Shown piece after piece: positions 5,775 through 48,825 of a stretch of DNA of 64,000 bases. Source of the stretch: Octopus sinensis (Eukaryota); NCBI RefSeq assembly GCF_006345805.1, contig NC_043023.1:8370001-8434000 (forward strand), written 5' to 3'. Numbering within the stretch: position 1 is the stretch's first letter; each line of letters begins with the position of its first letter. The position numbers were made by a program, and so were the translations under genes. The notes under the pieces were generated by a model. It had not been told where the DNA came from. It made no database searches and saw only the letters and a program-made list of their open reading frames with translations.

Positions 5775-7004
5775 GGTGAGCGTGCGGATGTGTATGTAAG
5801 AATGTGTAAGTGTGTGTGTGTGTGTGTGTGTTGATAGTGGCTAATGACTATGATGTGTGGATGTATGCGTGCGTAGATGTGTGCGTTTGTAGGGTGTGGG
5901 TGTGCGGATGATTGTGTATGGGTGTGTAGATGATGTTTGGTGGTCTGGGTGTTGGAAAGTGGTTAGTGCTAGTGCTAGCACAAGCACAGACACACAAATA
6001 TATATAGATTTATGTATATATTTGTGTTCCCTCAAGATCACCTAATAACCAATATTGGTGTTACACACCCTGTAACTTAGTGTTTCGGCAAATGACACCG
6101 AGAGAATAAGTGCTAGTCTTTCAACAAATAAATGCTGATCTCGTTTGGTTCTAATAAAGGCTCTAGCATGGCCATTGTCAAATTACTGAAAAAAGTACAT
6201 GTATAAACGTGTTACATACACACACACACACACATATAGATATATAGACACACGCAAATATATACATACATATATATATATATATATTGGTATATGTGTG
6301 TATGTGTTTACGTATCTGTCTGCCGATTGATAGATATATTGATAAAGTGATAGATGGATGGATAGACAGATAGATGGATAGATAGATAGATAAATAGACA
6401 GATAGATAGATAGGTAGATAGATAGATAGAGAGATAGATAGATAGATACATGTCTCCAGTTCTAGTTTAGTCTTCTTTACCCTTTTTATCTCATTTATCA
6501 ATATCATATCGTCGTTATTTTTATTCCTATTCTCATCCTTCTCTTTTGTTATAGTTTCAACTTTGTATATCAGCGTCATCCTTCTCTTCATCATTCCAAA
6601 TATTAAGAGCACCATCAGTAAATATTGTCATCATAATCATCGTCTGCGTCCTCGTAGTGGTTGTCACCATCATCGTCATCATGATCATCCTCATCATCAC
6701 CATCATCATCATCCATATCATAATCTGGAAACACAGGTGCAATGCCAGCAGACCGAAACAAATTCACCACTACCAAATCCGTCACCGTCAATGCCCTCAT
6801 CATAATAATTATCGCTTTCATAATCACTTAACACTCTGCCATACATCTTCATAATCTTCACTTATCATTTTCATAATCGTCTTCACCAAATTGTCTCACT
6901 TCTACCTATTTTTCTTCTATTTCAGCAGCTAATTCATTGGACATAATATTTGAAATATATGACTAATCACTTCTATGTTGTTTTGTTCATGAATTATCTT
7001 TCAG

Positions 7005-7076
7005 AGATCTATCCAATAATACAATCGTGAAAATTGAAAAAGGATCGTTTGCAAATCTTCCGAGCTTAAAAATTTT
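7005..7076 (+). CDS. LRR exon 1 (72 nt, phase 2-2) of spliced LRR/LRRCT/three-finger-domain gene
   Basis: tttcag|AGATCTATCC...AAAATTTT|gtaagt; translates DLSNNTIVKIEKGSFANLPSLKI(L), a typical 24-aa LRR; GACTAAT branch-like motif about 40 nt upstream. Confidence 0.9.
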
Positions 7077-7379
7077 GTAAGTTGAACCAGTCTTGTTCAT
7101 ACTATATTCCTGAGTATATATTTCCTCAAATTTAATATCTTTCTATCTTTCTTTCTTAACCTTCTTTTGCCCTTCTCTAACTCACATTATCTCTCTCTCT
7201 ATATATATGTATGTGAGTTGAGTGTGTTTGTGTGTGACGATGTGCGTTTAAATAGGTCTTTGTGTTCTACATCACTGTTTGGTATATTGTGAAAAGTGCG
7301 TATATAGTCATACGTATATTTATGTCTGAAATGTGTGGATAAATATATAGTCCTTTAATGTGTCGTCTTGGGCAGGAGA

Positions 7380-45342: not shown

Positions 45343-47199
45343 GTAAGTTTGATCTTCCTGATATTATTAATCTAATTGTATATTTCTACATATAATGTCT
45401 TCCCTTCTATCTTCGCTCTCTCTTTCATCCTCTCTATCAGACTTTCACTTTGTTTGTGTGTGTGTGTGTGTGTGTGTGTGTGTGGGTGTGGGTGTGTGCG
45501 CGCGCGCGCGCGGGGGTGTGAAAATAATTAAGAATATGAGTGTTTGTGATGTGATTTATATAAATTAATGTGAACAACGTAACAATTAACGATTAAAGAC
45601 AAAATTCCCCAATACGGGGAAAAGCTATGTAGGACAACGAGGGGAATTCAGAGATTCAGATCTAACTATATTCCACAATTAGGCACCAGTAATAAGAAGT
45701 AGAATACACATCCAGGTGCATTCCTCCTGTATGATAAGTAAATTGAAATATCCTATGGCAGAATTCGGAAAAATTCAACATTTTGACAACAAACGATACA
45801 TATAGAGACAGTTGCGTTTATTAGATTTCGCAGTATAAAGCCTACAATTGTTTCTATAATATTCACATAGATAACACCTTCAGTATACAGATGTAGCGGG
45901 AGCAACACTTAAGGTTGGTAAAATTGATGCAAACACAAAGATACAATGCTTATATACACATACATATATCTATACATAAATAAAAATATGATGAATCTGA
46001 ATTGTAAACTGAATTTTGTTGCATTCAATAACATTTTTGTAATTGCAGACAGAGAGGCAGATTTAAACATGCAGACTCTTTCTCACTCTCTCTCTCTCAC
46101 ACACACGCACGCACACACACACAACCACAAAACAGTTTGTAGTCATACACATGCTCACATACATATATATGTAAATATACATGTGTCACAAACATATATA
46201 TATATAGACGTATATATATATGTATATATATGTATACATATGTGTGTATATATATATATATATATATATATATATATGTATATATGTGTGTATATATATA
46301 TATATATATATATATATATATATATATATATATATATATATATATATATATATATATATATATTTACATATATATATATATACAAGGCCACCTCATCCCA
46401 TGGACGGTGCTGAGGTGTCAAAAATTAAAACCAAAGGGTTTCAAAAAACTTGTCCGACCGTCCCATAGTTCTCCCCTTTGAGAAACACTGATTTAACCCA
46501 AATTTCAGACACCAGCAAAAGAAGAAATAAAGATAGACTTTTTTCTATTCCAAGAAAAACGATTCTTGCAAATGCACGTTCCCACGGCTTTATCGATCGC
46601 ATACACACCTGAAATCGATTTTTGTAATTTTTTCAAAACTTATGCATGCCCTGATAGCAGAAAATAGAAATAAACAGTTTTTGACTGATATTTCTAATTT
46701 TTCGGTATGTGGCTAAGCAACCTGTTGCCTGCCCCTTTATATATATATACATATATATATATATATATATATATATATATATATATATATATATATATAT
46801 ATATATATATATATGAGAGCAATATTAAATCTGTGAGTGAGACGTAAACAGTAGTAGCACGGAATCGTACTTCTATAATTTCATTGTTGTCAAAAGCATC
46901 ATGGCCATGAACGCGACCATGAACGTGCTCAACACCACACGCCTTATCATCTCATCATCATCATCATAAACGACATCATTATTAGCATCATCGTCACCAT
47001 CAGTAAACTTCGTCACAACTCATGATTATCAATATCATTCTAACCTTCACTCCTCATTATCTTCATTTTCATCAAATTTTTGCACATCTACTTCCTTTTC
47101 TTCTACATCTACATCCAGTTGATTAGACATATGCGTATTTAAAATTGTGTGACTAATCATTTTTATACCATTTCTCACCAATTCTCTTCCAACTTACAG

Positions 47200-47271
47200 A
47201 AATCTAGCCAATAATAAAATCGCGATTATTGAACATGGATCGTTCGACGGTCTCACCAATGTAGAAAAGTT
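47200..47271 (+). CDS. LRR exon 6 (72 nt, phase 2-2)
   Basis: ttacag|AAATCTAGCC...AAAAGTT|gtaagt; NLANNKIAIIEHGSFDGLTNVEK(L). Confidence 0.9.
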
Positions 47272-48825
47272 GTAAGTTTGATCTTCCTGATATTATTAAT
47301 CTAATTGTATGTTTCTACATATAATGTCTTCCCTTCTATCTTCGCTCTCTCTTTCATCCTCTCTAACAGATGTTCACTTTGTCTATGTGTGTGTATGTGT
47401 GTGTGTGTGTGTGTGTGTGTGTGTGTGCGTGCATGCGCGGGTATGAAAATGATTAAGGATATGAATGTTTGTGGTTTACGTTTGTGATGTGATTTATATA
47501 AATTTATGTGAACAACGTAACAATTAACAATTAAAGACAAAATTCCCCAATACGGGGAAAACCCATGTAGGACGACCAAGGGAATCCAGAGATTCAGATC
47601 TAACAATATTCCACAATTAGGCACCAGTAATAAGAAGTAGAATACACATCCAGGTGCATTCCTCCTGTATGATAAGTAAATTGAAATATCCTATGGCAGA
47701 ATTCGGAAAAATTCAACATTTTGACAACAAACGATAAATATAGAGACAGTTGCGTTTATTAGATTTCGCAGTATAAAGCCTACAATTGTTTCTAGAATAT
47801 TCACATAGATAACACCTTCAGTATACAGATGTAGCGGGATCAACACTTAAGGTTGGTAACATAGATGCAAACATAAATATACAATGCTTATATACACATA
47901 CACATATCTATACATAAATAAAAAATATGACGAATCTGAATTGTAAACTGAATTTCGTTGCACTCAATAACATTTTTGTAATTGCAGACAGAGAGGCAGA
48001 TTTACAGATGCAGACTCACGCACACACACACACACGCACACACACATACACACACAAACACGAGCACACATACTCAACCACAAAACAATTTGTAGTCATA
48101 CACATGCTCACATACTTATATATGTAAATATACATGTGTTACAAACATATATATATATTATATATACACACGCAAATATATATACACGTGTTCACAGACA
48201 TATAAAGAAACATGAATATATATATAGACAATAATATATTATTATTTTTATAATTTGTATTCTTATCTTATATGTATTGAATTATAAGATATATATGTAT
48301 GCTATTAAGGTTCTCATTTTGTTAAATGAATATATAATCCAACATTCTAATATATGAAAGTTGATTAACAAACTAAATTTGTTTCTCAATTTTCTTATTT
48401 GTATTATATATATATATATATATATATATATATATATATATATATATATATATATATATATAATTTACAAGATAAAGGCAAAATAAAAATTCTAATGTCA
48501 AATATGCCGTAAAAAAGACAAAAAGACAAAAATTTATCGCTTAAGAGGGGAAAATTCTTATGAATTAACCCCGAAATTGGGACCAATACGGTAATAACGG
48601 ATTTTTTAGAAATTTCTGTCGGTTTGTTTCGAGACGCATAAATTATAATGGTTATTGACAATTTTTGTCTTTTTTTCGGCATATTTGGCATTACAAAATA
48701 TTTCTTTTGCCCTTATCTTGTAAATTATTTATAAATTTAACCTTTAAAGGTAATTCTTGATATGCTGGCCATTGATAAAAAATTTTTTTCCGAAAAAATG
48801 TTTATCCTACATTAGATATATATAT

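Follow-up and report, generated by a model that had tools for sequence, protein, structure and literature searches.

The window, by which we mean the whole stretch of 64,000 nucleotides of Octopus DNA analysed here, probably covers the middle of one large gene in which an array of LRR exons is followed by an LRRCT-like cap and an adhesion GPCR, and whose repeats are subject to fast germline turnover and to selection on their concave face. In the proposed model, this gene would be transcribed from left to right, each extracellular LRR would be encoded by one exon of 72 nt, and presumably all intact exons would be included by default. A first exon upstream of the window would contribute a probable signal peptide and an LRRNT, and the cap exon at 55854..56020 would continue into the GAIN/GPS and seven-transmembrane part beyond the window. 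Unequal recombination between exon-plus-intron units of 2–8 kb, presumably by NAHR (non-allelic homologous recombination), would expand or shrink the array in the germline, TE insertions and deletions would eliminate single exons, and selection would preserve the solenoid scaffold and the splice signals together with rapid amino-acid change on the predicted concave face. Turnover and selection combined would give related species receptors that differ in repeat number and surface. Read in this way, the locus would be a concrete and datable example of a receptor binding domain remodelled exon by exon, in which the LRR face would be the part of an octopus-specific adhesion GPCR that evolves fast. 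Roles in the axial nerve cord, suckers, and skin have been proposed for the octopus-specific family of these receptors.

LRR exons and their cassettes

All six intact LRR exons of the window lie on the plus strand within the splice context cag|exon|gtaag and comprise 72 nt, which are read as 1 + 69 + 2 nt with phase 2 at both ends. They are located at 7005..7076 (A1; DLSNNTIVKIEKGSFANLPSLKI), 14428..14499 (A2), 22584..22655 (A3), 29051..29122 (B; RLYGNKISKIERGSFENLPRIWT), 45271..45342 (C1), and 47200..47271 (C2), in agreement with the number and length that had been read from the sequence alone. The six exons, when joined, match Pfam LRR_8 (E = 3.9e-40), and their repeats fit the pattern LxxLxLxxNxIxxIxxGxFxxLxxL of the typical 24-residue LRR type. 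Across orthologous stretches, the window is 96–97% identical to O. vulgaris, for which a 117-kb locus (L001) served as comparison; in the following, exons of the window and of O. vulgaris are denoted by w and v, respectively, followed by their position. The orthologue of A1 is v34569, and that of C1 is located at 97155 of L001 and differs from it at 8 of the 72 nt (counted by hand from the printed sequences).

Cassette borders within the window were determined by self-BLAST, which bore out that the LRR exons reside in duplicated A, B, and C cassettes. The A1 cassette (5773..13291, plus strand) consists of the exon and about 7.5 kb of intron and is orthologous to O. vulgaris L001 around 34569. 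It is followed by the A2 cassette (13292..21312, plus strand; about 8.0 kb), which has no O. vulgaris orthologue, and by the A3 cassette (21313..24211, plus strand), which is truncated to about 2.9 kb. A length of about 7.4–8.2 kb, earlier ascribed to all three A cassettes, thus applies to A1 and A2 but not to A3. Copies of the B type start at 25726, 29087, and 38283, and the C1 (43919..46358) and C2 (46357..48300) cassettes, both on the plus strand, are 88% identical to each other.

The decapitated exon and the two exon-less cassette sites described in the sequence-only reading were found as well, all on the plus strand. Of the decapitated B exon (25726..25761), the 3′ 36 nt and an intact gtaagc donor are kept and unrelated sequence stands in place of the 5′ half; a LINE-like ORF without Pfam match lies about 250 nt upstream. 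At the B3 junction (about 38344..38432), a deletion of about 290 bp has removed the exon together with its near flanks. At the remaining site, a C-type upstream intron (30313..31066) is followed by no exon: its homology breaks off no more than 2 nt from the point at which an exon should begin, and tcat replaces acag at the acceptor. A common upstream intron with the motif GACTAAT had also been proposed. The motif is present 40–47 nt upstream of the acceptor at A1, A3, C1, and C2, but reads gactaaa at B and is missing from A2, where a deletion of about 160 nt removed the region; its position fits that of a branch point, for which it is a candidate.

The introns of the array are rich in LINEs and microsatellites. 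LINEs coding for endonuclease and reverse transcriptase were found on the minus strand at a cassette junction (1064..3457; this element is co-duplicated in several O. vulgaris cassettes) and in the intron preceding C1 (40472..43647), and a LINE with reverse transcriptase on the plus strand (51350..54913) in the intron that separates C2 from the LRRCT-like exon. A search of the protein index with a three-finger-like ORF at 63752–64000 gave no candidate.

Probable link of the array to the downstream adhesion GPCR

The LRRCT-like cap exon (55854..56020, plus strand; (F)DLRNNTDMMCGC-x22-C-x18-C) was recognised by its acceptor phase: ttacag|T is compatible with phase 2, and the donor AAAG|gttagt leaves phase 1. 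As the exon reads NNTDMMCGC, it is missed by a regular expression for the canonical LRRCT motif NPWxCxC, and a Pfam search of the exon gave no LRRCT match either. It displays the pattern C-x-C-x22-C-x18-C and aligns with the LRRCT of LRRC4B/4C/4. Exon C2 and the cap exon together align end to end with the last LRRs and the LRRCT of LRRC4B (3zyn_A; query residues 4–101, i-Evalue 3.5e-8), with the CxC and the third cysteine in register. Both the cap exon and the splice sites flanking it are conserved in O. vulgaris, where the exon is annotated as the first exon of the downstream gene with GPS and 7tm_2. This gene model begins at an internal ATG of the cap exon, a start without signal peptide. 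Since the O. vulgaris GPCR gene starts with the cap exon, the LRR array most likely is the N-terminal ectodomain of this adhesion GPCR, whose annotation was split; from the compatible phases we infer a splice junction that would connect the array to the GPCR part. The precomputed Pfam list of the 899-aa O. vulgaris product contains GPS and 7tm_2 only. No candidate was found in the protein index for the first 40 residues of its annotated start, i.e., the cap-exon peptide, and the missing entry could be due to clustering at 90% under another representative. Rather than a free-standing new receptor system, the locus most likely encodes the ectodomain of an adhesion GPCR from a family already reported to be expanded in octopus; adhesion GPCRs that are specific to octopus, carry LRRs, and show signs of positive selection have been published (PMC6408891).

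At the other end of the array, the first exon of O. vulgaris (L001, about 9974–10141) encodes MLSFVLIMYMRFLLESHA, judged by eye to be a probable signal peptide, followed by CSICTC..VDC, an LRRNT. This exon ends in phase 2, and the position equivalent to it falls outside the window on the upstream side. With a first exon presumably located there and the LRRCT-like exon at 55854–56020, the span of 5784–48150 assigned to the locus before is too short. Phase 2 is shared by the end of the LRRNT exon, both ends of every LRR exon, and the start of the LRRCT-like exon, so that any subset of LRR exons stays in frame, as had been claimed.

When the six exons of the window were joined and searched against the clustered protein index, the O. 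vulgaris model P0001 was the sole match, so that a gene with these exons apparently is unannotated in the window's own species. The 190 aa of P0001 form an LRRNT and a small number of LRRs, with a short hydrophobic tail at the end; the model passes over three A exons in a row as well as the C exon. Its fold predicted by AlphaFold2 without alignment shows strands at a 24-residue period with pLDDT values of 70–89 over the repeats. A whole-library HMMER search with P0001 yielded mainly giant LRR proteins; the best N-terminally aligned ones (P0112, P0041, and P0117; 44–48% identity) are single-pass proteins with LRRs and LRRCT that lack GPS and 7tm_2, and they did not help to place the gene.

Taken at face value, the O. 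vulgaris annotation describes a small LRR protein that stands on its own, is encoded apart from the downstream GPCR gene, and would be secreted or lipid-anchored. We consider this unlikely. Its terminal exon has an equivalent in the window (50482..50554, plus strand; RMPQKLKVQIVAFIVSTAVHAFL and stop) that is identical and has an in-phase acceptor, and its hydrophobic tail is predicted to form a helix. However, P0001 has no C-terminal cap, although an in-phase LRRCT-like exon, claimed by the next gene, follows 5 kb downstream. The gene range of P0001 equals its CDS range and hence includes no annotated UTR, which suggests a lack of transcript support, and the annotation pipeline relied on ab initio prediction on repeat-masked DNA (PMC10700109). 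Conservation between the window and O. vulgaris around the terminal exon is not above background and neither confirms nor rejects the exon. The exon at 50482–50554 is doubtful and would be either an artefact of ab initio prediction or an alternative 3′ end; a P0001-type product could exist as a minor alternative of this kind. The cassette, present in eight copies, probably was partly masked in the O. vulgaris annotation. As it is itself a repeat, masking appears to have broken the gene models, leaving the gene split in two in O. vulgaris with some exons omitted, and apparently unannotated in the window's own species. By the same token, LRR-bearing adhesion GPCRs may be under-counted in cephalopod genomes, which should be borne in mind when such annotations are used.

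The exons that P0001 leaves out could also be taken as a sign of combinatorial diversity, that is, of many alternative splice combinations as in Dscam or the protocadherins, or of a somatic VLR-like assembly, either of which would make the receptor differ from cell to cell. Repeat masking probably explains this exon skipping equally well, and we regard combinatorial diversity as improbable even though LRR exons of 72 nt and phase 2/2 with compatible caps allow any subset in frame and the concave face is hypervariable from repeat to repeat. The near-identical strong splice sites of all A exons favour constitutive inclusion, and an LRR solenoid requires several repeats, unlike a choice of one exon among many. 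The intact cassettes are ordinary collinear exons with splice sites on one strand and not somatic donors, an anatomy that contradicts the likeness to VLR proposed in the sequence-only reading. There is an equally small chance that LRR-exon combinations, with or without copy-number polymorphism among individuals, would constitute an ectodomain repertoire of one adhesion GPCR gene. If diversity were combinatorial, the locus would provide a repertoire for cell identity or for chemotactile recognition in octopus arms and suckers, and an LRR-based counterpart of Dscam or the clustered protocadherins.

Cassette turnover and exon divergence

Comparison with the locus of a related species, which had been recommended as a check and here included trees of the copies of both species, revealed real birth and death of single-exon cassettes, with copy-number differences referring to one assembly per species. 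The window most likely comes from a sister species of O. vulgaris such as O. sinensis, which split off about 2.5 million years ago (PMC10700109). Only two of the six window exons have O. vulgaris orthologues. The introns of the orthologues w7005 and v34569 have a distance of 0.026, and those of v43745 and v50090 are closer to each other (0.017), which indicates that the latter two were duplicated after the species split. Orthologues of w14428 and w22584 (0.043) are absent from O. vulgaris, and those of v57627, v73348, and v87270 are absent from the window. Exon v50090 belongs to a recombinant cassette that is v73348-like upstream and v43745-like downstream, with the breakpoint in or adjoining the exon. 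Losses likewise are lineage-specific: the O. vulgaris cassette corresponding to C2 has lost its exon. DNA specific to the B type did not turn up in the 117 kb of the O. vulgaris locus that were compared. The diversity demonstrated here is germline diversity between species.

Within the A cassettes, the exon is the most divergent stretch of 72 nt. Its mean pairwise distance is 0.160 compared to 0.068 for the intron, and none of 130 non-exon windows of 72 columns (mean 0.068, maximum 0.125) reaches the exon value; the pairwise comparisons behind these and the following figures are non-independent. As anticipated from the variable surface inferred in the sequence-only reading, nonsynonymous divergence clusters at LRR positions 2, 3, 5, 7, and 8, which are predicted to lie on the concave face (pN 0.406, pS 0.182). 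The scaffold positions have a pN of 0.021 and the remaining positions one of 0.148, and all 15 intact exons of both species retain cag and gtaag. The concave face is, we infer, the ligand-binding face, and this predicted binding surface is changing about six times faster than the introns, a pattern consistent with selection for new binding surfaces.

Alternatively, instead of selection on point mutations, exchange with other LRR exons by gene conversion or recombination, within the array or with paralogous genes, might account for the excess divergence of the exons. We give this explanation little weight. The clear recombinant v50090, with its breakpoint in or next to the exon, speaks for it, as does the exon pS, which at 0.148 is raised above the intron distance, too; the raised pS may partly be caused by CpG sites or multi-hit codons and partly by recombination or conversion beside point mutation. 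However, a tract as short as 72 nt at about 80% identity is a poor substrate for gene conversion. Moreover, how far a position has diverged depends on its place in the structure (scaffold pN 0.02 vs. concave pN 0.41), so that selection is needed whatever the source of the variants.

That the cassettes are neutral segmental duplicates with decaying pseudo-exons or an assembly artefact is very improbable and largely refuted: LINEs and microsatellites do fill the introns, the exon is wholly or partly lost at three cassette sites (25726, 31066, and B3), and the protein index offers only an O. vulgaris model for the joined exons, but the intact exons retain frame, splice sites, and scaffold residues and outpace the introns, and uncollapsed haplotypes are ruled out by copies that differ by 4–17%, by sequences without any N in both the window and O. 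vulgaris, and by a comparable array in the independent O. vulgaris assembly.

Comparison with known systems

The preferred reading, an adhesion GPCR with a germline-variable LRR ectodomain, has a close counterpart in the “group 3” adhesion GPCRs of Ritschard et al. (2019; PMC6408891), an expanded family of the octopus lineage with GPS and adhesion-type 7TM that includes branches with omega above 1, forms tandem clusters, and carries LRRs in 5 of 22 members. The present gene is a candidate member. That study dealt with whole gene models and does not describe one-repeat-per-exon cassettes, changes of the LRR number within a gene, or site-level selection. ADGRA2 and ADGRA3 (GPR124/GPR125) also are adhesion GPCRs whose N-terminus carries a block of LRRs with an LRRCT as its cap. 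Their LRRs, a constant set of about four, precede Ig and hormone-receptor domains, whereas the present array has more repeats and a changing number of them; no Ig or hormone-receptor domains of the ADGRA type appear in the precomputed Pfam list of the 899-aa product, which is a weak negative.

The VLR genes of lamprey and hagfish resemble the array in having an LRRNT, 24-residue LRRs, and an LRRCT, many LRR cassettes per locus, and hypervariable concave-face positions 2, 3, 5, 7, and 8. VLR cassettes are non-spliceable donor segments in either orientation that are somatically copied into an incomplete gene, in a rearrangement driven by a cytidine deaminase. In contrast, every intact cassette here contains a collinear plus-strand exon, in order and with cag and gtaag, and VLR-type somatic assembly appears contradicted by this anatomy. 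The Dscam1 clusters share with the array the tandem exons of equal length that descend from one ancestor and belong to a cell-surface receptor, but exactly one exon per Dscam cluster is included, as enforced by competing RNA pairings or similar means, whereas here the frame allows many exons to be joined, as the structure would lead one to expect.

One LRR per exon of about 72 nt, with frame-neutral gain, loss, or skipping, is also known from the genes of LGR4–6, the glycoprotein-hormone receptors, and Slit. Their LRR arrays are ancient and fixed in number, and the LGRs have a 7TM part of the rhodopsin type; the product downstream of the array has 7tm_2 instead of the 7tm_1 of the LGRs and glycoprotein-hormone receptors, and so falls outside the rhodopsin class. 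In plant LRR resistance genes, finally, unequal crossing-over alters the repeat number and diversifying selection acts at the x positions of LxxLxLxxN, much as proposed here. The plant repeats are mostly contained within one exon, whereas the unit of change in Octopus is a multi-kb exon-plus-intron cassette, in what is probably an animal GPCR.

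LRR exons and their cassettes

Six intact 72-nt LRR exons lie on the + strand of the window, as the sequence-only reading had claimed and as an 86-nt repeat family of six copies, a motif scan and direct extraction all confirmed. Three are of type A (starts 7005, 14428 and 22584), one of type B (29051) and two of type C (45271 and 47200). Each is bordered by cag upstream and gtaag downstream and reads as 1+69+2 nt, and the six joined exons matched Pfam LRR_8 (E=3.9e-40). Their only close relative was P0001, a 190-aa LRR protein of O. vulgaris (58% identity, E=1.2e-35) whose gene spans 97 kb on OX597842.1.

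Self-BLAST recovered the duplicated A, B and C units proposed earlier, with three copies of the B cassette and two of the C cassette, but not three full-length A units: the A exons are spaced 7423 and 8156 nt apart and the third unit is truncated. The exon is gone from three cassette sites, which agree with the one decapitated exon and two exon-less sites of that reading. The B copy at 25.7 kb retains only the exon's final 36 nt together with the donor, the B copy at 38.4 kb lacks the exon and its near flanks, and a C-type upstream intron without exon (30313-31066) loses homology at most 2 nt from the expected exon start. The proximity of the 31066 breakpoint to the intron-exon border could reflect chance or point to an RNA-mediated or splice-site-linked event.

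The upstream introns of A, B and C are recognisably homologous, which indicates that all three types derive from a single unit. GACTAAT is located 40-47 nt 5' of the acceptor and fits a candidate branch point. The shared upstream intron described earlier was thus recovered, but its GACTAAT is not found at every exon: in A2 (14268-14427) this region was removed by a deletion of ~160 nt relative to A1 (6820-6981). The pyrimidine tract and cag of A2 are still present, and its splicing may be weakened by the loss.

LINE fragments abound in the introns, as do (GATA)n, (TA)n and (CA)n tracts. Long (GATA)n tracts occur 0.6-1.4 kb 5' of each A exon (5582-5774, 6325-6448, 13823-14049 and 21579-22010), and their lengths vary among A copies from 31 to 108 units.

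Cassette turnover between two octopus species

The window aligned with a fetched 117-kb O. vulgaris locus (L001) at 96.4% identity (window 23-11226, L001 27577-38794) and 97.4% identity (window 41131-43944, L001 93029-95849), and therefore stems from a species very closely related to O. vulgaris. Its likely source is O. sinensis, whose divergence from O. vulgaris has been dated to ~2.5 My ago (PMC10700109). Neither sequence contains N bases. In L001 the first exon (~9974-10141) encodes a probable signal peptide plus LRRNT and ends in phase 2; it is followed by eight A exons (15682, 23030, 34569, 43745, 50090, 57627, 73348 and 87270), one C exon (97155) and a second C cassette without exon; no B-specific DNA was found in these 117 kb. 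The window begins within the array, the LRRNT exon and two O. vulgaris A exons falling upstream of the equivalent position.

In a neighbour-joining tree of window and L001 copies based on 1 kb of downstream intron, w7005 and v34569 (window and L001 exons, respectively, named by start) were orthologues (distance 0.026). A younger pair, v43745/v50090, was restricted to O. vulgaris (0.017) and another, w14428/w22584, to the window (0.043), and v57627, v73348 and v87270 had no orthologue in the window. v50090 is a recombinant, as the sequence before its exon is similar to v73348 and the sequence after it to v43745. Only two orthologous exon pairs (A1 and C1) exist in the shared interval. Cassette turnover is real and fast, within the limit of one assembly per species, and the proposed birth and death of cassettes was upheld by this related-species comparison, in which cassette content differed.

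The same 4.6-kb LINE insertion occurs at several A-cassette junctions in both species (window 1141-5774; L001 53278-57032, 67981-72628 and 83833-86680), implying a single insertion subsequently copied with the cassette and providing a useful marker for duplication order. A 1.8-kb LINE segment is inverted between the species (window 39353-41132, L001 92847-91117) and in the window lies between two inverted repeats of 220 bp (39134-39355 and 43630-43852). A 3.3-kb element (33280-36572) with 700-bp inverted termini of 94.6% identity, whose minus-strand ORFs gave no Pfam match, is located within the B region, to which nothing in L001 corresponds.

Divergence of the repeat surface

When a 1.5-kb alignment of ten A copies was scanned in 72-column windows, the exon was the most divergent (mean pairwise distance 0.160), compared with a mean of 0.068 and a maximum of 0.125 in 130 non-exon windows. 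The excess also appeared in many single pairs, for example v15682/v23030 (14/72 nt differ, against a rate of 0.042 in the intron; P=3e-6). Nei-Gojobori sums over 55 non-independent pairs gave pN 0.168 and pS 0.148 for the whole exon; with the same non-independence, concave x positions 2, 3, 5, 7 and 8 had pN 0.406 and pS 0.182, scaffold positions 1, 6, 9, 11, 14, 19 and 22 had pN 0.021, and the remaining LRR positions had pN 0.148. Judged from these sequences, purifying selection acts on the scaffold, and the predicted binding face changes ~6x faster than the intron, with pS also raised, recombination contributing and pairs non-independent. The contrast between concave and scaffold positions supports the variable surface postulated earlier. 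Between the C1 orthologues, 8/72 nt differ, 7 of them nonsynonymous (hand count from exon sequences). AlphaFold2 without alignment predicted a regular 24-residue strand pattern for P0001 (pLDDT 70-89 across the repeats).

Most likely, germline unequal recombination between multi-kb units of 92-95% identity would add or remove whole repeats and leave the frame unbroken, single exons would be inactivated by LINE insertions and deletions, and the concave face would be diversified by selection. We infer NAHR as the mechanism, binding by the concave face and default inclusion of all intact exons.

Gene identity and known LRR systems

P0001 has neither a cap nor an annotated UTR, and its short terminal exon (window 50482-50554) showed no extra conservation over its surroundings between the window and O. 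vulgaris. An LRRCT-like cap exon at 55854-56020 (+), (F)DLRNNTDMMCGC-x22-C-x18-C, has an acceptor (ttacag/T) that takes phase 2 and a phase 1 donor at 56020. Joined to C2, it aligned from end to end to the final LRRs plus LRRCT of LRRC4B, LRRC4C and LRRC4, cysteines in register, and in O. vulgaris its cysteines and splice sites are kept (5/167 nt differ). The next called O. vulgaris gene (899 aa, GPS and 7tm_2) lacks a signal peptide and has its start ATG within this exon (MSNYIK...). The simplest reading of the sequence would be a single gene encoding signal peptide, LRRNT, LRRs, LRRCT, GAIN/GPS and 7TM, split by annotation. Ab initio prediction in O. vulgaris used repeat-masked DNA (PMC10700109); a cassette in at least eight copies would presumably be masked. 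Ritschard et al. (PMC6408891) have described an expansion of adhesion GPCRs specific to octopus, in which 5/22 members carry LRRs, omega exceeds 1 on some branches, and expression occurs in the axial nerve cord, the suckers and the skin.

Further downstream, the window carries a 3.9-kb insertion (59692-63546) that is absent in O. vulgaris. By eye, its ORFs resemble LINE reverse transcriptases, and a direct duplication of 230 bp borders it (59458-59691 and 63547-63775). A well-formed eight-cysteine exon follows at 63809-63992 (+; L001 ~112276-112459), ending in CC-x4-CN, with acceptor ttgttacag/CC and donor CCTG/gtaagt (phase 0 to 1). It weakly matched three-finger/Ly6-uPAR domains (UPAR_LY6_2, E=0.0064; ACVR1 ectodomain, E=0.02; LYPD1, E=0.085), a protein-index search yielded no candidate, and every cysteine is retained in O. 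vulgaris even though 7 amino acids differ. A direct join to the LRRCT-like exon is not phase-compatible; the exon may belong to a small gene that lacks annotation, or lie further along the receptor gene.

The octopus gene is probably not an ADGRA orthologue, as neither an Ig nor an HRM domain is on record. The likeness to VLRs as a system, suggested by the sequence-only reading, was not sustained, because the cassettes are ordinary exons. The LRR positions variable in the octopus array are nevertheless those variable in VLRs and plant resistance proteins, and by analogy its LRR domain would work like other capped LRR binding modules.
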